This document shows positions 6,138-62,117 of a stretch of 64,000 nt of DNA, in pieces. Each line of letters begins with the position of its first letter. Within the stretch, counting starts at the first letter, position 1. A program made the position numbers and the translations under genes. Under the pieces are notes generated by a model. That model worked only from the letters and a program-made list of their open reading frames with translations. It had not been told where the DNA came from and did not search any database. The DNA is taken from sequence record OR413581.1, one strand, 5' to 3'.

Positions 6138-6214
6138 TCCGCTTTACGTACTGAACGTCAGTTGACAAATCATTAATGGCGGTACACGGCGTACCGCCTA
6201 GAGGATAGAAAAAG

Positions 6215-7543: not shown

Positions 7544-7568
7544 TTTCAGATATATATTACCTAGGTGA
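7544..7568 (+). promoter_or_regulatory. early-type phage promoter (virion RNAP class)
   Basis: TTTCAGATATATATTACCTAGGTGA, identical at 16046; contains the phiKZ early consensus TATATTAC. Confidence 0.8.
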
Positions 7569-16045: not shown

Positions 16046-16070
16046 TTTCAGATATATATTACCTAGGTGA
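16046..16070 (+). promoter_or_regulatory. early-type phage promoter
   Basis: TTTCAGATATATATTACCTAGGTGA, identical to 7544-7568. Confidence 0.8.
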
Positions 16071-16694: not shown

Positions 16695-17111
16695 ATGATT
16701 AATGAGAAGCTCCAAAAGTATTTAAAGAATGACACCGACTGGATGGTCCTTGACCAGTACGGACGATTTGTTCCGCTATCCAAGGATTCCCCTATACCCC
16801 GTGACAAGGCGATTTATATTCCTGACGGTAAGGGCGGTTATCGTTTCTGGGAAGGCCAGGAAGTAAAAGAGGAAATGTTCTACATGGAGCCGAAGTTCCG
16901 TGCGGCGTTCCCATCGAAAAATATCAACGGCTATGTTTACAACGCAATTCCGCCAATTACGCACCCTAATTTTGAGGTTGTGAATTACCCTGCAACTGTT
17001 TTGGATTGGCAACGTGCCATTAGTGAACACTACACGATTCCGCTTGAAGGTGTTTACTTCCCATTCCGTGATATTAGTTTAGATGACTTTATTAACTCTC
17101 TTAAGGACTAA
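16695..17111 (+). CDS. hypothetical protein
   Basis: 138 aa, RBS AAGGA. Confidence 0.75.
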   Translation: MINEKLQKYLKNDTDWMVLDQYGRFVPLSKDSPIPRDKAIYIPDGKGGYRFWEGQEVKEEMFYMEPKFRAAFPSKNINGYVYNAIPPITHPNFEVVNYPATVLDWQRAISEHYTIPLEGVYFPFRDISLDDFINSLKD

Positions 17112-17113
17112 AA

Positions 17114-17974
17114 ATGTACAGCATTACTGATTTCATCAAAAGTTCAGATTTCCCCCTACCTCCCGACCACGAAGTATTGGCTAGCGATCCGTTAACCGAT
17201 GCGGCCATTGTCCAGCTGGACCGCGACAAACGTCGTACTTACGTCGTGTTGGTCGAAGGGCAGAGCTACGGCCTGTCTTCTTACGACCTGGAGCAGCAGG
17301 AGCGTTTCCTCGATGAAAACCGCAAAACGTCAATGTATAGCGCTATCTCGCGCGCGTTGTGCAAGGTAATGGCGACGATCACAGACAGCAAAAAGCGCAT
17401 TGCCGTGCTACAGGGTATCAATGCGCTAACGACCAAAATCCAGCAACTTGAAGGTTTCCATTGCCCACGATTGGAAGCCGCACAGAAGGATGCTAAGGGC
17501 GATGAGGCCATGGCGCTGTTTGAAGGCAATACTGTCTTTGCAACAGCTGAAGCTTGTTATCTCACCTATCCAACTTTTAACTATACGCCAATCAGCGACA
17601 CCGTAGACGGGATTAAAGTAGAGAACGTCGTGCAATGGGGTCGCGCAAATCTCAAGTTTGTGATGTCCCATGAAGAAGAAAATCAAGACGGCCTTGGCCA
17701 GAAGATTCAACGTTGGTTCACGGCGCGTTTGGACGCCGACTGGGAAGCGCATGTTAACGCAGAGCTTCGTAAGTTTCACGCGGTAGTCGCATTGTTAAAA
17801 GAAGACGCTCCCGCCCCGAAACAATCGAAGGCACCAGTGGTTGGCTGGACGTGTTCCGGCTGTAACCGCAACCATGTCGCTACAGTACCGAGAACTCATC
17901 GCTACACTTCGCAGACGATGAACATTGCTTGCCCGGCTTGCGGTAAGATCAACGAAGTTGATTATAAACCGTAG
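17114..17974 (+). CDS. hypothetical protein with C-terminal zinc ribbon
   Basis: 286 aa; CSGC...CPAC at C-terminus. Confidence 0.75.
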   Translation: MYSITDFIKSSDFPLPPDHEVLASDPLTDAAIVQLDRDKRRTYVVLVEGQSYGLSSYDLEQQERFLDENRKTSMYSAISRALCKVMATITDSKKRIAVLQGINALTTKIQQLEGFHCPRLEAAQKDAKGDEAMALFEGNTVFATAEACYLTYPTFNYTPISDTVDGIKVENVVQWGRANLKFVMSHEEENQDGLGQKIQRWFTARLDADWEAHVNAELRKFHAVVALLKEDAPAPKQSKAPVVGWTCSGCNRNHVATVPRTHRYTSQTMNIACPACGKINEVDYKP

Positions 17975-17980
17975 TAGTAC

Positions 17981-18020
17981 CCCCTCTTACCTTCGGGTAA
18001 GAGGGTTTTATATTTATTTT
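17981..18020 (+). terminator. intrinsic terminator (25 nt identical to 44467)
   Basis: CCCCTCTTACC-TTCG-GGTAAGAGGG plus T-rich tail. Confidence 0.9.
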
Positions 18021-18023
18021 CCG

Positions 18024-18062
18024 AAAAGAAAATAAAAGGCGCTCTCTCCCGAAGGAGAGAGC
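18024..18062 (-). terminator. minus-strand intrinsic terminator
   Basis: Minus strand reads GCTCTCTCC-TTCG-GGAGAGAGC followed by T-rich tail. Confidence 0.8.
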
Positions 18063-18088
18063 TTATTCACATCCACTTAGAGGTTAAC

Positions 18089-18235
18089 ATGAATACCTTT
18101 ATACAACAACTGCGTCAGCAACAGCTGAAACAAGTCGCTTTTCAACAACGTCTGCAAGAGGTTAGCCGCCAACCGCAGACTTCCACCCGTACCATTAAAG
18201 GACTAGGAGGTGACATCATCTTCAATAAGAAGTAA
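18089..18235 (+). CDS. 48-aa Gln-rich peptide, tandem paralog A
   Basis: Not in ORF track. MNTFIQQLRQQQLKQVAFQQRLQEVSRQPQTSTRTIKGLGGDIIFNKK; RBS AGAGGT; 18/48 identical to paralog B without gaps. Confidence 0.8.
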   Translation: MNTFIQQLRQQQLKQVAFQQRLQEVSRQPQTSTRTIKGLGGDIIFNKK

Positions 18236-18243
18236 CACTAACC

Positions 18244-18266
18244 AGGGGTGCTCGAACACCCCTTTT
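18244..18266 (+). terminator. hairpin/terminator after peptide A
   Basis: AGGGGTG-CTCGAA-CACCCCT plus TTT. Confidence 0.6.
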
Positions 18267-18347
18267 AACTCCCGTGACAGTATATCAGTGCATTGTGTAC
18301 CACCACAGCGCAGCGATATATTAACAACCTGCCTAAGGAGGCACTAC

Positions 18348-18494
18348 ATGGAACAACTACGTTCGCAAATACTTAACCATTACGTTAAGCAAACCCAATT
18401 CAACCAACGTGTACAACAGTTGACTGCGCCCAAGCAGAACACTGTTCGTCGTATCAAGGGTTTAGGAGGTGAAATACTACTAAACAAAAGTTAA
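18348..18494 (+). CDS. 48-aa Gln-rich peptide, tandem paralog B
   Basis: MEQLRSQILNHYVKQTQFNQRVQQLTAPKQNTVRRIKGLGGEILLNKS; RBS AAGGAGG 6 nt upstream; same length as paralog A. Confidence 0.85.
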   Translation: MEQLRSQILNHYVKQTQFNQRVQQLTAPKQNTVRRIKGLGGEILLNKS

Positions 18495-18507
18495 CATGAA
18501 ATAACTC

Positions 18508-18535
18508 TTACCCGAGTGTTCCAGCACTCGGGTAA
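18508..18535. other. 11-bp perfect hairpin after peptide B
   Basis: TTACCCGAGTG-TTCCAG-CACTCGGGTAA. Confidence 0.7.
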
Positions 18536-18600
18536 TTCCATGCATATAAATAGTTCGTCGTATTTTTTTTGATCTTGGCAGGACGCATAAACTGCCCGTA

Positions 18601-18618
18601 GGGGAGCCTAAGCTCCCC
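18601..18618. other. hairpin downstream of the helicase stop, no adjacent U-tract on minus strand
   Basis: GGGGAGC-CTAA-GCTCCCC. Confidence 0.55.
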
Positions 18619-18626
18619 AGTGTTCG

Positions 18627-20189
18627 TTAGAACAAATCATCACCCATTCCACCGGTGAAGAAGTTGATAGACGACGCTGTTACGGTTTCTTCTTTATCAC
18701 AATCCCAAGGCAGGATGCCAACATCCTGGAAAGGTATCACTGTGTAGTGATAAGATTCTTTAGTATCGATAATGGTGCGGTGCTTACCGCGTTGAACTTC
18801 TAAGAAGCTATGGCCGTTGACCACACGCTTGTTAAAATACATTTCACCATCGGCCTCGTTATCAAGGCTCGAACAACTATCGTAAAGACCACGACCAGGT
18901 AAGTTCTTACAGAAACCTACCGGGTCTAACGCTTTTAAGCGCTTACCTTCTGGGGAAATCTGGTGTGGGGCAATTAAGAACCCACGGTTGCGTACCACTT
19001 GGATGTTACGAGCAATACGATAAATTTCTTTGATATCACTCCCGGCAATACCGTTGCCGTGTCCTGCTTTGCTGATTGTGCCTAAGTAGTCTGCGCGAAT
19101 GCCAACAACATGATAACCGCGACGACGTAAGTCGAGAATAAGGTCGTTGATGTAGTGCACTTTAAAATCGGAGTTGGTGTGCTTTTGGAAAACGTAGTCC
19201 CAACCGTTTGCGCGAATCTTACCACAGAGGTAATCAGACATTGCTGTTGTGTGTGCTAACTTCTCTTCAGCGGTCGCATCTTGGGCAATGGTCATCTGTG
19301 GAACTTGTCCTTCAAAATGACCGTACAGTGCTTGATAGCCGTAAGCTAAGTTAACGTCGAGTTCGTTTTCTAAACTCAAGTCAAGAATAATTGGTTGCAG
19401 TGTGCCCTTCACATCCGCCATTACTTTCTCAGGCGTGTTGAAGATAGGAATCGACAAGCTCAGTAAGAGACTGAACAAAGACTTACAGTTAAAAGGTAAC
19501 GCCGGCATTAGCCACAGTTCTTCGGTAATCCCTTTGTTACAACCGAGCATTTGGTTAATGGCTTTCCAGCCCGTCTGCAAACCATTACCTGCTGCTTTCT
19601 TGTTAATCGAGTCGAACACTTTAACAAACGGAGCACGATTATCCGTAACCAGCTCACCAACCAGTGATGGAATCTTATTATGAGAGCGTTCACCGAACGT
19701 AGATAGCGCCTCTTTGAGTTCGAGCACTGCGGTGTTCAGATCAACACGTGTCTCAGTTCCATTCAATGCTCCGAACGCGCGACCCATTTTTGTTTTGAGT
19801 TCGACGCTCTGTAAACATTGACGTAATTGGAAATAATATTGAGACAGTTGTCGATTAAGATGCTCGGTACGTTTGTCTTCTTCCTCGGGCAAATCGTCTT
19901 CGAGGAATTTGGTAATCGTATCGTATAGAGGACGTACTTGAGTGGTGGCCAGCTTCAAGCGCTTCATAACGCTCGCGTGGTCGTATTCCATGCCGCCGTC
20001 TATGATAGATGTGATAATGTCCTTGATCTCGATGAGTGCAAAGCGCTCTTCGCCATCTTCCGCATATTCCGGAAGCTTGATCTGCATCAGAACTTTTCTT
20101 ATGACATCATGATCCTTGCTAGGGTCCGTCAGCATAGATTCTGTATACAGTGCGGCTAAGGCGGTTATCAACATCATTTTACTATTCAT
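18627..20189 (-). CDS. dnaB: DnaB-like replicative helicase (phiKZ gp118-like)
   Basis: 520 aa; LQTGWKAINQML, phiKZ-type Walker A ALPFNCKS, RADYL, APHQ, QRGKHR; divergent from the capsid operon. Confidence 0.88.
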   Translation of the reverse strand: MNSKMMLITALAALYTESMLTDPSKDHDVIRKVLMQIKLPEYAEDGEERFALIEIKDIITSIIDGGMEYDHASVMKRLKLATTQVRPLYDTITKFLEDDLPEEEDKRTEHLNRQLSQYYFQLRQCLQSVELKTKMGRAFGALNGTETRVDLNTAVLELKEALSTFGERSHNKIPSLVGELVTDNRAPFVKVFDSINKKAAGNGLQTGWKAINQMLGCNKGITEELWLMPALPFNCKSLFSLLLSLSIPIFNTPEKVMADVKGTLQPIILDLSLENELDVNLAYGYQALYGHFEGQVPQMTIAQDATAEEKLAHTTAMSDYLCGKIRANGWDYVFQKHTNSDFKVHYINDLILDLRRRGYHVVGIRADYLGTISKAGHGNGIAGSDIKEIYRIARNIQVVRNRGFLIAPHQISPEGKRLKALDPVGFCKNLPGRGLYDSCSSLDNEADGEMYFNKRVVNGHSFLEVQRGKHRTIIDTKESYHYTVIPFQDVGILPWDCDKEETVTASSINFFTGGMGDDLF

Positions 20190-20203
20190 GGAGCATCCTT
20201 AAA

Positions 20204-23117: not shown

Positions 23118-23142
23118 TTATAGATAGATATTATCTTAGGGA
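23118..23142 (+). promoter_or_regulatory. early-type promoter variant
   Basis: TTATAGATAGATATTATCTTAGGGA aligns ungapped to the 25-bp motif. Confidence 0.65.
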
Positions 23143-23922: not shown

Positions 23923-23947
23923 TCTGAGATAGATATTATCTACGTGA
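23923..23947 (+). promoter_or_regulatory. early-type promoter variant upstream of the RNAP beta operon
   Basis: TCTGAGATAGATATTATCTACGTGA. Confidence 0.65.
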
Positions 23948-24996: not shown

Positions 24997-26775
24997 GTGT
25001 TTAAAGATGCGATTAGGAAGATTAAAGAGGCAGGCGAAATAGTGCCTTTTAATCGTGCAATTGCAGAAGGAGTTGGGTACACACAAGCTAAAGATGGGAT
25101 ACATGATCGTGTGGCAACCATTCTACGTCGTGAGTTGACGTATGATGAAATCGATAATCCGAAATTACCAGAAGGGTTAACGGTATTAGGTTGTCGCCAA
25201 ATGTCGCCGTTTGAAGCTTTTATCTTTAAGTTATCGAAGTCGGATAACAATTCACGAAATAATCGTGGCCGGTCAATTATTAACATCTCATCCACTGACA
25301 CGTATATGGTAATGGCCTCGTTCCGAGTTCCAGGTGATCCTCGCCCGGTACAACGACCAATGAGCCTGCCGTTTATTCGTCGTGGCGGCTTAATGAACTA
25401 CTATGGTACAACGTACCACGTAGCACCTGTAATCCATCAACCTGGTATATGTCGTGAGCACGGTGGTATCTTTATTAACTTTGACTTCACACGCAAGGTG
25501 TCTATCAAGTTCTGTAAGAAACCAACGAAGATTCTGGTGAATGGTCGCCCTGAGCAGCTGTTCTTGCCAGGTACATCGAATCTGTTTGTCTCAACTGGAC
25601 AGATTGGACACGACACCGATGAGAAGCCACTGATGTATTGGCTCTTTGGGCGTTATGGCTTTAAACAAGCCGTGAAGCGTTATGCGGGCGTTGATGTGAC
25701 GATTTGGCCAGCGATTAAAGTACGTGATGTGGACTTAACGAAGTATGTGGTGATTCAATCTGGTGAGCCACAACTCGCGAAGACCATCCAGTACGTACTG
25801 TTGGTTAAACGTGAAGATATGCCTAACACCGATGCAGGGCGTTGGGATCAAAACGAACATCTGTTGCTGGTAGCGACTGCCGCATTCTTCAAAGCGGCGC
25901 ACTATTACGCAGGTAAACAGAACAGTAAGAACGGTCGTGCACCAACACTGCCGGGGCTGTTTACACAGATTAATGAAATGGCAATGGACGAAGATATTGC
26001 AAACCTCAACTCTGCAGCGTCTTGGCGTGAAGTGTTGGGCCGCAGTATTCGCGGACTGAAGCCTTCGGATATCGAACTGAGTCGCAGTATGGACAGCCAC
26101 TTCCAGGAATGTGAACGCTATGTCAACAGCACCTTCCGTGGTGAGCTGATGGCAAACGATCCGTCCATCCCTGATGATTTGGATATGTTTGATTTCCTCT
26201 GGTATACCACGCAGCTGATGGTACGCACTCGACTTACCAAGCAAGATGATATTCCGTCTATGTACGGAAAACGTCTCACGGTAACCGATTACTTACTGTT
26301 GGGCCAACGTGGCTTTACCACAACGATCTCGAAAATACGTTGGAAGCTGGGGCAGTTGGAACATCGGACTCCAGAGACAGCGGCGAAGTCTATTCGAGAC
26401 GCACTGAACAAACAGATCGTGCTCAATCTGGTGATGCGCACCATTACGAGCAACGGCGGTATCAGTTTCTTCAATGCCTCTACAGAATCAATGGTATTGG
26501 CAGTGTCTACGCACGCCATCGGTCAAACCGAAACCGATGCTAAGCGTTCGAAGAAAGGAGGCAAGACCGTTAACTTGAACGACCGTACTAAGCACGCATC
26601 CGCGTCGCATCTGGAATGTGGTAACGTCTATTATATTCCTAAGTCGGCACCGTTTAAGGCGAACATCCTCAACCCGTACATGAAGACCAACCCAAGTTTG
26701 GTAATGATGCGGAATCCTAAACTGGACCCGTACATCAGACCGACCGAAGAAGACATTGCTAAAATCGGCCGCTAA
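24997..26775 (+). CDS. non-virion RNA polymerase, beta subunit N-terminal part (phiKZ gp123-like)
   Basis: 592 aa; MSLPFIRRGGLMNYYGTTYHVAPVI matches beta region motif; canonical position after MCP. Confidence 0.8.
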   Translation: MFKDAIRKIKEAGEIVPFNRAIAEGVGYTQAKDGIHDRVATILRRELTYDEIDNPKLPEGLTVLGCRQMSPFEAFIFKLSKSDNNSRNNRGRSIINISSTDTYMVMASFRVPGDPRPVQRPMSLPFIRRGGLMNYYGTTYHVAPVIHQPGICREHGGIFINFDFTRKVSIKFCKKPTKILVNGRPEQLFLPGTSNLFVSTGQIGHDTDEKPLMYWLFGRYGFKQAVKRYAGVDVTIWPAIKVRDVDLTKYVVIQSGEPQLAKTIQYVLLVKREDMPNTDAGRWDQNEHLLLVATAAFFKAAHYYAGKQNSKNGRAPTLPGLFTQINEMAMDEDIANLNSAASWREVLGRSIRGLKPSDIELSRSMDSHFQECERYVNSTFRGELMANDPSIPDDLDMFDFLWYTTQLMVRTRLTKQDDIPSMYGKRLTVTDYLLLGQRGFTTTISKIRWKLGQLEHRTPETAAKSIRDALNKQIVLNLVMRTITSNGGISFFNASTESMVLAVSTHAIGQTETDAKRSKKGGKTVNLNDRTKHASASHLECGNVYYIPKSAPFKANILNPYMKTNPSLVMMRNPKLDPYIRPTEEDIAKIGR

Positions 26776-38024: not shown

Positions 38025-38501
38025 ATGATACGTGTTGCTTACGAAACACGAGATACGGATGGAACCCGTATAAACGTCATCCGCCGTGTGGAGCTTGTTC
38101 CTCAGCATGAACTGAATATTGCAGACAGTTCTCTTAGGGGCACTCCTGTTAAGATTCTGAATCTTACGAGATGTTCTTTTCATCACAGTAAGACATCACC
38201 AGCAATACGGTCCAGTAAAAGAAAAAGTTATGCCGATTTAAAACGTCGGTTGTCCCGGCATTTTCGTCGGAGTGCCTGGAAGGCTTTAGTTGAGGTTTTG
38301 GTCGACGAGCACCTTATCCAGAGGTTGGAGTGGGAAGAAGTTCTCAAGGAAGCGGGCTATCCAACAAAACCTTTCTCTTATCACTGGCATCACTTCAAAA
38401 AACAGTTCCATGATGCCTTACAGGTATCGCCAAACACCCGCAACATGATTCACCGTTTGGAGAAAATGGACTGGCTTCTACCCTATCTGGAAGAGGACTA
38501 G
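38025..38501 (+). CDS. basic hypothetical protein
   Basis: 158 aa. Confidence 0.65.
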   Translation: MIRVAYETRDTDGTRINVIRRVELVPQHELNIADSSLRGTPVKILNLTRCSFHHSKTSPAIRSSKRKSYADLKRRLSRHFRRSAWKALVEVLVDEHLIQRLEWEEVLKEAGYPTKPFSYHWHHFKKQFHDALQVSPNTRNMIHRLEKMDWLLPYLEED

Positions 38502-44548: not shown

Positions 44549-44573
44549 TTTCAGATATATATTACCTTAGTGA
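44549..44573 (+). promoter_or_regulatory. early-type phage promoter
   Basis: TTTCAGATATATATTACCTTAGTGA, 2 mismatches to 7544/16046. Confidence 0.8.
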
Positions 44574-62000: not shown

Positions 62001-62117
62001 TATAAAGAACACGGCGCAGGACATGATATTTATCGTGACTTGGCAATCCCCGACCACACAACAGCCTCGCTCGATATAACGTTTACTATCCCAGACGATC
62101 CGCTCGAAACTAATTAA
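59100..62117 (+). CDS. large GH8-like (alpha/alpha)6 glycoside hydrolase-type tail/appendage protein
   Basis: 1005 aa; ATTEGQ (E73) and NAADAE (about 338-343) followed by ...GEPRYKAAL match GH8 SEGQ and AtDaD motifs. Confidence 0.6.
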   Translation: MRKFKISAKRHALNYALSLAYGHQDFVRRNTGLTNDAHNDHYLINPEGVLSNNRHFIADSMAVYQPNGDATTEGQSLLIIGYCHMYIATKNQMWLDAAIHAWEAYATYYYAGQAIPDSPQRWICNWLVNGKEPVLADYPVHPTEPTHGGYKCVPVTFTNGRCQIPQGAPFFGEYLNNFFSAHRGHPTWGAVNADVQKIKESEDGLIDWSKVPDYLIVNPEKPYDVKAWVDWNTMLNDPTGYTPMWGGSTSKGPRYEPDWFVVWTGEKVQDGDVIESGLPDAQKGTVQLKDTSINGVYLINYASQVPVEHGGYLFDRNEPWHNRPVHTPLKGSVNQMGNAADAEVWFIDACYLLWRITGEPRYKAALDSVFYTAHEYTYIDAKDKFFRRSKLAETPFTDGISYDYKYPSTVEVAYSRDENGDIVFRSEEAVQNFMEQQAVRFRINSQSKLRVTYGGVCDNGDALACKVMVDINPVKADTEEVNWYGCTLPGSTSMEVEQHDIDLGHLARMTNPANGEDYIIADARACSDYGGCTWQEKFENNIYDGRSGTIVEALFPNDDAGFIIGFWLTDAGVAPPQSIVYRADADFNFRFEDTDKWRWWWMLPATNGEWKQVIIRPEDATLSGYQPDHDTDVEPKPAAPNYTTIDQVTILPDSAVENAHFSWYCVNDVPPLFNADDGWTLTFRIVIRGGSAFTGKVGDCTIKDYRLDSLAYCPGTIPFSNIYSEGTYQLGAWHGMPYPGYQYPFMYTIHTDDRYKDWLLNQIRFMHDSQTNYQTQIGELGPGCAAYIWNRWDNYSYGPADTWTTFHWGDGHPWAGYQPRAYNAAARCWYELVVRGKEVPPELIVYVENWAKWLVGFLDRFDNHTPNEFPTAPNKPVWVENDFTAHMCALWIAGSAYAAMAGCTVDGLDRIMDMGMKEMGDNFTVTDIPGKAINGAWSPWANPTTDNGQAFGFYTGEAMRAIGLYLLYKEHGAGHDIYRDLAIPDHTTASLDITFTIPDDPLETN

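Follow-up and report, generated by a model that had tools for sequence, protein, structure and literature searches.

What are two open reading frames of exactly equal length doing between an operon and a helicase gene of a jumbo phage, each with its own ribosome-binding site and each followed by a hairpin? Tiny genes of unknown function are numerous in jumbo phages of the phiKZ/SPN3US type, and this pair is a clean, well-bounded example that brings extra conserved signals with it: an internal string resembling a Shine-Dalgarno (SD) sequence, a private hairpin and a dedicated antisense terminator. We analyzed the pair within a stretch of 64,000 nucleotides from sequence record OR413581.1 (the window) and found real, previously catalogued, uncharacterised accessory genes for small, very basic proteins. 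The comparisons given below establish their coding status, paralogy, purifying selection, distribution and copy-number dynamics together with the anatomy of the cassette that holds them.

The two small genes are diverged paralogs of a catalogued family

The source of the window is the 240.6-kb genome of Salmonella phage SPLA3, an SPN3US-like jumbo phage. Copy 1 (18089-18235, + strand) and copy 2 (18348-18494, + strand) each encode a protein of 48 residues with a net charge of +6, and the coordinates given by the initial annotation for these 147-nt ORFs were exact. It had also assigned a ribosome-binding site to each ORF, and these sites are the SD sequence AGAGG of copy 1 (18079-18083, + strand), 5 nt before the ATG, and the SD sequence AAGGAGG of copy 2 (18335-18341, + strand), which lies inside a small 5-bp hairpin (18330-18343). 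The description of the pair as unannotated was wrong. Both ORFs are annotated CDSs in SPLA3, in SPN3US (SPN3US_0071 and SPN3US_0072) and in other records, copy 1 being the homolog of SPN3US gp71 and copy 2 that of gp72 (94-98% identity), and both match the 48-position PHROG 18219 profile end to end (residues 1-48 on positions 1-48, E about 5e-26). By this profile match the window ORFs are members of PHROG 18219 ('unknown function') rather than analogs of it. No mention of gp71 or gp72 was found in the literature on SPN3US.

When the two copies are aligned without gaps, 19 of the 48 residues are identical, so that the gap-free homology first reported stands and its count of 18 does not. None of 100,000 shuffles reached 19/48, and BLASTP gave an E value of 6e-12. 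Different codons encode 9 of the 19 identical residues, as the initial annotation had noticed in inferring selection at the protein level, and that inference is borne out by an overall family dN/dS of 0.08-0.4 and by conserved homologs with intact frames in relatives from three genera (Seoulvirus, Machinavirus and Wellingtonvirus). Judged from these comparisons, the copies are true diverged paralogs that are protein-coding and under purifying selection. Family members are 47-49 residues long and share the invariant columns M1, Q20, R21, G38, L39, G40, G41, I43 and K47, with the last 12 residues forming the most strongly conserved stretch of the protein. The N-terminal half is constrained in the Machinavirus clade (pN/pS 0.09-0.29) and fast-evolving in the Seoulvirus lineage, where copy 2 compared with its SPAsTU counterpart gave a pN/pS of about 1.2.

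The proteins are basic, polar and predicted to be largely helical

Every family member has a net charge of +5 to +9 and a pI of 10.6-12, and the proteins are polar (GRAVY -0.7 to -1.0, with 8-14 residues being Q or N) and lack a hydrophobic stretch. A small hydrophobic toxin or type I toxin-antitoxin peptide was rejected, the proteins being too polar and without a membrane-spanning segment. AlphaFold2 modeled residues 2-26 of both copies as a helix (pLDDT about 81-88) and residues 35-38 and 41-44 of both as a beta-hairpin of low confidence (pLDDT 51-58). The predicted shape is thus a helix plus a weak beta-hairpin, a topology common to both copies that we hold with moderate to low confidence. 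The helix and, at low confidence, the C-terminal GG-turn hairpin that had been proposed are therefore both present in the models. The proposed amphipathicity of the helix is not significant, given that its hydrophobic moment of 0.23 was matched or beaten by 34-39% of shuffles.

The initial annotation did not recognise the family, and beyond the family itself we found no match in Pfam, NCBIfam, PADLOC or the PDB or, by Foldseek, in the PDB or BFVD. Neither peptide gave a meaningful match in Pfam or NCBIfam (the Pfam search also covered 21 family members), and neither copy matched a PADLOC family. The PDB profile search gave only chance coiled-coil matches (E about 1), whereas Foldseek returned no matches in the PDB and a single one in BFVD, which was a member of the family. 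The profile-search alignment was composed of the window sequences plus the proteins returned by the searches. An exhaustive HMM search of 1.84 billion representatives recovered only three clusters of the family plus one 373-residue repeat protein (P0034). The lead that P0034 gave to a SHOCT or DUF1707 SHOCT-like domain, for which hhalign reported 59% probability over only 21 columns, was rejected in that 0 of 21 members matched either Pfam model at E values up to 10. A KH-type GXXG RNA-binding domain was likewise rejected. KH domains have about 70 residues and a GXXG loop, no KH family appeared in the Pfam scans and the protein has only 48 residues.

Anatomy of the cassette

The back-to-back terminators that had been reported upstream of the pair are two back-to-back hairpins, at 17982-18005 and 18041-18062. 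Hairpin 1 (17982-18005, + strand) is the terminator that ends the gp66-gp70 operon. It has a UUCG loop followed by a U-run (-18.2 kcal/mol, z -4.6), and its position is conserved in all genera. Hairpin 2 (18041-18062, - strand; -17.9 kcal/mol) is a terminator dedicated to the minus strand and placed ahead of the small genes, also with a UUCG loop but with a U-run on the minus strand only. Its stem differs in sequence between genera yet still pairs, and compensatory changes are visible by eye. The AT-rich spacer of palindromic form between the two hairpins (18006-18040) contains the U-run of hairpin 1 on the plus strand and that of hairpin 2 on the minus strand, and the block is conserved in the three genera. 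The conservation of a minus-strand terminator at this position suggests antisense transcription across the small genes.

Downstream, a T8 run, a conserved GGCAGGACGCATAAACTGCC block and hairpin 4 (together 18563-18618) adjoin the stop codon of the conserved neighbour, a convergent DnaB-like helicase gene homologous to SPN3US gp73 (18627-20189, - strand). As the 18563-18618 stretch is also found in relatives without the small gene, it marks the boundary of the cassette. A sigma-70-like promoter scan of the cassette found none, and the cassette contains no copy of an early-type promoter motif that we found de novo. The upstream operon has this early-type motif. SPN3US-type jumbo phages use their own RNA polymerases, and their middle and late promoters are not predictable from sequence (PMC7598289). 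Rfam gave only sub-threshold noise, located on the terminator hairpins, and no SPN3US transcriptome was found in the literature.

A stable hairpin follows each small gene, as had been claimed: hairpin 3a (18244-18263; -12.1 kcal/mol, z -3.7) after copy 1 and hairpin 3b (18508-18535; -19.6 kcal/mol, z -8.2) after copy 2. Both have a GTG-N6-CAC apex, and these are the only two long hairpins with such an apex in the 240.6-kb genome. Hairpin 3 always lies directly 3' of the stop codon, starting 8-13 nt past it, and accompanies each copy. On the plus strand it shows no clear U-run. The hairpin-punctuated cassette of the initial annotation is supported as a self-contained unit.

A further signal lies within the genes. 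The SD-like string TAGGAGGTGA spans codons L39-G40-G41-D42 of copy 1 (18204-18213, + strand), where it is conserved at the nucleotide level, and the same string is found in copy 2 (18463-18472, + strand). The L39-G40-G41 codons are only YTA-GGR-GGT in 22 of 22 sequences, these being minority codons (22%, 23% and 44.5%, respectively), whereas the neighbouring G38 uses all four glycine codons. Within 44 kb, GGAGGTGA was found in no other CDS.

Distribution, copy number and natural hybrids

The family was found only in phages of about 240 kb belonging to Seoulvirus, Machinavirus and Wellingtonvirus, mostly as a single copy and in all three genera at the same locus, always between the gp70-type operon and the helicase gene. 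Asesino, Caitlin, Kwan, CR5 and Phobos lack the gene and any remnant of it despite having the same flanks, and their gp70-type operon and helicase gene are 62-205 nt apart. Because close relatives in other genera lack the gene, the family is accessory. Several hundred SPN3US-like contigs contain a member. Host genus does not predict presence: the gene is found in phages of both Salmonella and Erwinia and is missing from part of the Erwinia phages. A helicase-specific partner was rejected, relatives with the same helicase being without the gene.

Several SPN3US relatives that are 98% identical each have one intact hybrid gene in place of the pair, and in-frame hybrids were found in EC001, SEGD1 and 1252. 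The crossover point lies inside the shared GLGG codons, and the natural hybrids arose at the microhomology that TAGGAGGTGA in copy 1 provides. Two different copy-2-type tails are present among the hybrids, indicating at least two collapse events, and the existence of natural in-frame single hybrids indicates that one copy suffices. Copy 2 shares 77% identity with the lone family gene of SPAsTU, and the two copies belong to different lineages of the family. The proposal that the pair is dosage-amplified is not supported, since the copies are only about 40% identical, come from different lineages and can be replaced by single hybrids. Recent dosage amplification was rejected on the same 40% identity.

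A trans-acting binder is the favored function

We favor, with moderate confidence, the view that these genuine diverged paralogs of an accessory family encode a small basic protein that binds its target in trans and is borne by a moron-like cassette. Each gene forms a moron-like, self-contained unit that brings its own SD and a family-specific 3' hairpin and is situated among the terminators that separate the gp66-gp70 operon from the convergent DnaB-like helicase gene. The plan of the protein would be a long N-terminal helix, a flexible linker and the invariant C-terminal KGLGG(D/E)I turn. Most likely it would act in trans, with the C-terminal turn and the Q20-R21 side of the helix making contact with a conserved partner. 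To judge by the basic charge, this partner may be nucleic acid, a ribonucleoprotein or a protein with an acidic surface. The N-terminal helix diversifies in the Salmonella-phage lineage. As unequal crossover repeatedly collapses the pair into one working hybrid, the copies overlap in function. Purely trans action leaves two observations unexplained: the SD-like string inside the genes is conserved at the nucleotide level, and the close linkage of hairpin 3 with the stop codon is conserved as well.

The inhibitors or decoys proposed by the initial annotation, directed at host defence or at a host or phage machine (anti-defence proteins or modulators of a helicase or the ribosome) and amplified for dosage, are an unlikely though far from implausible alternative. 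Such proteins would fit a patchy accessory family, a small protein encoded by a gene in a moron-like position and the rapid change of the N-terminal half in Seoulvirus (the pN/pS of about 1.2 between copy 2 and SPAsTU). However, two copies about 40% identical and from different lineages are not a recent amplification, single hybrid copies are common among the isolates and the gene is missing from relatives with the same helicase. Moreover, no match was found in PADLOC or the other libraries, and the presence of the gene does not follow host genus.

We give only a small chance to a cis-acting ORF, in which the SD-like string eight codons before the stop would pause a ribosome at the end of the ORF, where it masks the 5' arm of hairpin 3. 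Whether the hairpin forms would then depend on translation, which would in this way govern termination, read-through or the stability of the transcript in the region shared with the convergent helicase transcript. The conserved C-terminal residues would act from inside the exit tunnel. The invariance of YTA-GGR-GGT despite the use of minority codons, together with the lack of GGAGGTGA in any other CDS over 44 kb, argues for such a role, as do the concentration of protein conservation in the last 12 residues, the placement of hairpin 3 right after the stop and its movement with each copy, and the dedicated upstream minus-strand terminator, which implies overlapping convergent transcription. The nascent-chain regulator raised by the initial annotation is somewhat strengthened by the presence, close to the stop, of an SD-like string conserved in its nucleotides, but is weakened by the constraint on the N-terminal half. 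A stalling peptide would need neither the purifying selection on that half in Machinavirus nor the fixed length of 47-49 residues. In addition, the single-copy phages have no co-oriented gene downstream (the convergent helicase gene comes next), hairpin 3 is without a proper plus-strand U-run, and consensus folding downstream of the small genes gave no conserved alternative structure of the antiterminator type.

A slim chance goes to a module of protein plus site, in which the basic peptide, probably as a dimer, would recognise, in RNA or DNA form, the GTG-YTNNAR-CAC hairpin or palindrome that belongs to its gene, and would so autoregulate or serve some local function at the locus. Across 17 sequences from three genera the GTG/CAC apex of hairpin 3 is invariant while 8 of the 11 stem pairs of hairpin 3b covary, and the same few loops recur in different genera. 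These features are consistent with a recognition site, as are the strongly basic charge of all members and the restriction of such long hairpins to the two positions behind the two copies. However, the hairpin 3b loop is inverted in SPN3US and its orientation flips between close relatives, so that no strand-specific loop sequence is kept, and the argument from covariation loses weight because inversion alone is able to preserve complementary arms. Literature searches on loop inversion gave nothing useful. A 3' hairpin inherited as a terminator or stabiliser would be a simpler account of the linkage, and no nucleic-acid-binding fold was recognised with Pfam, the PDB or Foldseek.

It is a long shot that all three layers (protein, mRNA and DNA features) are co-selected as one module, with the basic peptide, the SD-like pause string and the loop-flipping quasi-palindromic hairpin (GTG-YTNNAR-CAC) tuning the collision zone with the helicase transcript. 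Control would be exerted through ribosome position or through binding of the peptide to its own hairpin, and transcription from the convergent helicase gene does not seem to end before the dedicated upstream minus-strand terminator.

That the peptides are small basic parts of the virion, packed along with the DNA or inside the head, is very improbable. The composition is very basic and the major capsid gene is only two genes away, but the proteins are unmentioned among virion proteins in the SPN3US mass-spectrometry papers (which may label genes otherwise) despite tryptic peptides of detectable size, gp71 and gp72 are missing from the shared-gene table, the small genes are absent from close relatives whose capsid genes are the same, and the upstream operon has an early-type promoter motif. 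Chance frames over a non-coding or antisense RNA bounded by hairpins are scarcely credible and were rejected for the strong constraint: the minus-strand terminator upstream and CATA/TATG-type motifs downstream are conserved, but start, SD, length and stop are kept in three genera, synonymous change is saturated with dN/dS well below 1, and the frame stays intact after crossovers.

Significance and comparison with known systems

If the trans-acting binder is right, the pair adds one more small accessory binder awaiting its partner. If instead the cis-acting ORF or the peptide-plus-hairpin pairing were true, the locus would show how such phages, whose terminators are poorly known, manage convergent transcription, and a three-layer module would represent a new way of controlling convergent transcription, coupled to translation or to a peptide, in a phage with its own RNA polymerases. 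Nature has supplied copy-number variants (two copies versus one hybrid) among isolates that are otherwise 98% identical. Comparison of expression and protein localisation in these existing isolates could assign a role without engineering.

SPN3US gp71 and gp72 and their orthologs are the same genes as the window copies, with no difference. Lambda N with boxB is a system of an arginine-rich peptide and its cognate hairpin. The present family may be likened to it as a short, very basic, putatively helical peptide genetically linked to a hairpin of invariant apex, but there is no sequence relationship, the loop of the family flips between relatives and its hairpin lies 3' of the gene itself. Ribosome-arrest or leader peptides such as SecM, TnaC and the Erm leaders offer a second possible analogy, in which a short ORF with C-terminal conservation is directly followed by structured RNA. 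The family adds to this its nucleotide-conserved SD-like string just before the stop, but differs in that its single-copy phages lack a co-oriented downstream gene and in that the N-terminus and length are also constrained. Phage morons, known from the genomics of lambdoid phages, are independent small transcription units inserted between conserved genes. Unlike these, neither copy has a promoter of its own that we recognised, and the phage is a virulent jumbo phage rather than a temperate one. The likeness lies in a small gene with its own SD and 3' hairpin set between two conserved neighbours, and in gene-less relatives that keep those neighbours with the flanking terminator and T-run sequences joined.

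Two paralogous small genes

The record of Salmonella phage SPLA3 (OR413581; record base 62001 is base 1 of the window) was 100% identical to bases 17000-20200, and SPN3US and its relatives, which are Seoulvirus jumbo phages of 240 kb, were ~98% identical there. Two 48-codon ORFs, copy 1 (18089-18235) and copy 2 (18348-18494), lie exactly where the initial annotation put them, 3' of the gp66-gp70 operon and convergent with a DnaB-like helicase gene (gp73 homolog, 18627-20189, minus strand), past which come gp74 and then the major capsid gene. They had been called unannotated, but are coding sequences in the SPLA3 (SPLA3_PHROGS00079/80), SPN3US (SPN3US_0071/0072, or gp71/gp72) and other records; the SPN3US papers examined mention neither gp71 nor gp72. 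The upstream neighbor gp70 is reported to be essential and non-virion in SPN3US (PMC5105663), and its homolog (17114-17974) has a C-terminal CxxC...CxxC zinc-ribbon-like tail with weak matches to PHROG 6417 ("translational regulator") and to Lar-like or YnfU-like models. Elsewhere in the window, a 158-aa ORF (38025-38501, plus strand) that fills a 496-nt gap without annotation in the SPLA3 record is probably a missed gene. The 215-nt "intergenic" stretch ahead of the "polymerase" CDS annotated from 25201 reads like coding sequence, and a GTG at 24997, giving a 592-aa ORF (24997-26775, plus strand), could be the start of that CDS.

Both copies have the expected Shine-Dalgarno sequences, AGAGG (18079-18083) for copy 1 and AAGGAGG (18335-18341) for copy 2, the latter inside a small 5-bp hairpin (18330-18343, TGCCT-AAGG-AGGCA) that could damp copy 2 translation. 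They align without gaps as paralogs at 19/48 identities, not the 18 first counted, a value reached by none of 100,000 shuffles (BLASTP, E 6e-12), and 9 of the 19 identical residues use differing codons.

Both copies fill the 48 positions of PHROG 18219, for which no function is given. Members turned up solely in ~240-kb contigs from Seoulvirus, Machinavirus and Wellingtonvirus phages of Salmonella, Escherichia, Proteus and Erwinia, whether by tblastn of a phage collection (the check first proposed), by profile against 5.8 billion proteins or by exhaustive HMM searching of 1.84 billion representatives, and they formed only three clusters at 50% identity. Members are 47-49 residues long throughout, with M1, Q20, R21, G38, L39, G40, G41, I43 and K47 invariant and P29 and K37 nearly so. 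No match to the peptides was found in Pfam, NCBIfam, PADLOC, or PDB sequences or folds; one unrelated repeat protein gave a weak SHOCT-like lead, which testing did not bear out. Protein-level selection was borne out by dN/dS values of 0.08-0.4 wherever synonymous change was unsaturated. Within the protein, constraint on the C-terminal part holds in all lineages (0.15-0.44); that on the N-terminal half holds in the Machinavirus clade (0.09-0.29) but gives way to fast evolution in Seoulvirus (copy 2 versus SPAsTU, ~1.2).

An accessory gene of variable copy number

Outside the SPN3US species the gene is single-copy and always has the gp70-type operon on one side and the convergent helicase gene on the other. 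The same neighbors are just 62-205 nt apart in Asesino, Caitlin, Kwan, CR5 and Phobos, and six-frame translations of these five relatives, searched with the profile, yielded no gene remnant (controls, E 1e-26). Hence, the small gene is accessory. Asesino, an Erskinevirus lacking it, has a helicase 87% identical, and the table of genes common to SPN3US, PhiEaH2 and CR5 in the SPN3US paper skips genes 66-72.

Two copies are present in SPN3US, SPLA3, SPLA1a, SPLA5c, Proteus phage 7 and MET_P1_082_240. The single SPAsTU gene is 77% identical to copy 2, copy 1 being a separate lineage. In EC001, SEGD1 and 1252 the missing segment runs precisely from the GLGG codons of one copy to the homologous ones of the other, and the gene left behind is intact and in frame, with its body from copy 1 and its tail from copy 2; judged from identical scores, JN03, SaP7 and many SPFM phages probably carry the same hybrid. 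The junction microhomology is the 10-nt TAGGAGGTGA, present in both copies. As hybrid tails match two copy-2 alleles (SPLA5c-like and SPLA3-like), collapse occurred at least twice, or was followed by exchange. The hybrids indicate that one copy is enough and that the halves are interchangeable, which favors overlapping function over recent dosage amplification; the initial "dosage-amplified" label is further countered by the separate lineages of the copies. Several LR5359xx records (SPFM1, 5-10, 12, 15 and 20) break into 40 small pieces when aligned here and give chimeric 67-68-aa "proteins", suggesting scrambled assemblies, and Lh1B (OK428535; same length as EC001) has NNNNN directly 3' of the small gene, so these records are no reliable guide to copy number.

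Predicted structure and mode of action

AlphaFold2 models (21-sequence alignment) were only moderately confident (mean pLDDT 65.6 and 71.3) and gave both copies one topology: a helix at 2-26 (pLDDT 81-88) joined by a floppy linker to a beta-hairpin (35-38/41-44). The helix plus GG-turn hairpin proposed initially was thus recovered in both, but the beta-hairpin is of low confidence and the amphipathicity claimed for the helix was not significant. The standout feature is charge, every member having a net +5 to +9, a pI of 10.6-12 and 8-14 Gln/Asn residues.

On balance, we lean toward a small, basic binding protein that would act in trans. This is argued by constraint on the full length, N-terminus included, in one clade, by the fixed protein length, and by the maintenance side by side of two recombinable protein lineages. 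The inhibitor or anti-defence role first suggested, stripped of its "dosage" claim, is a special case of action in trans; with no PADLOC match we regard it as rather unlikely.

Conserved codons and hairpins

Codons L39-G40-G41 read YTA-GGR-GGT in 22 of 22 sequences and spell the Shine-Dalgarno-like UAGGRGGUGA eight codons upstream of the stop. In the phage, 22% of Leu codons are YTA and 23% of Gly codons are GGR, and all four Gly codons are in use at the adjacent G38; the joint chance is <=1e-10 for 6-8 independent lineages. GGAGGTGA occurs in no other CDS across 44 kb. These fixed codons go beyond what a purely protein-level model accounts for; possible roles of the string are a ribosome pause site, an mRNA-internal pairing partner or something else.

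The hairpins reported after copies 1 and 2 (18244-18263 and 18508-18535) are stable, far better than shuffles, begin 8-13 nt past the stop, and are the sole ones of this type with >=7 pairs in the 240.6-kb genome. Their three apical GTG/CAC pairs are invariant in 17 of 17 sequences. In close relatives the loops (18251-18256 and 18519-18524) are each other's exact reverse complement (SPLA3 versus SPN3US in both copies, Huxley versus pEa43, pEa29 versus SPAsTU), and the same few loop sequences recur across genera. This amounts to flip-flop inversion between stem arms, which also occurs in plastid hairpins; such flipping means that no selection on one strand holds the loop orientation. Compensatory changes at 8 other pairs and pairing of 93% of cells overall (31-43% with a slid partner) are weaker proof of RNA-level selection than these figures suggest, since inversion itself may partly keep the arms complementary.

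A cis-acting, translation-coupled element built of the string and the hairpin would draw on the fixed codons, but faces the constrained N-terminus and fixed length; we consider it unlikely. That each peptide and its own hairpin work as a module fits the hairpin after each copy, subject to the same caution on covariation, and seems to us quite improbable. A virion role is very improbable, and chance ORFs are scarcely credible given the dN/dS values.

Transcriptional setting

Flank architecture is alike in all three genera. Upstream hairpins are back-to-back, as described initially: hairpin 1 (17982-18005, plus strand; UUCG loop, then U-run) ends the gp66-gp70 operon, and in hairpin 2 (18041-18062) both the UUCG loop and the U-run are on the minus strand, while the stem varies by genus and keeps its pairing. 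Hairpin 2 looks like a dedicated minus-strand terminator, which would mean that minus-strand transcription, probably of the helicase 3' end, runs across the small genes.

The motif AGATATATATTACCT heads the gp66-gp70 operon (16050-16064), recurs exactly at 7548-7562 and 44553-44567 and with 2 mismatches at 23122-23136 and 23927-23941 (all plus strand), and sits 40-58 nt upstream of start codons. Intergenic matches number 7 in the window versus ~1 expected, and 13 genome-wide, all plus strand. It matches what has been published on the AT-rich early promoters of phiKZ-like phages (PMC7598289). Upstream of copies 1 and 2 we found neither this motif nor a sigma-70-like site; middle and late promoters of such phages are not predictable (PMC7598289). 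A short TTACG-type motif, often 3' of terminator T-runs and before the next gene (intergenic, near 6140, 8375, 23880, 36830, 39640, 43780 and 46130), may be a further promoter class.

Adjoining the helicase stop, 18563-18618 holds a T8-11 run, a GGCAGGAC(G/A)CATAAACTGCC block and a hairpin, and is kept across genera, phages without the small gene included. Its minus strand contains TATG, the only element common to phiKZ late promoters (PMC7598289).
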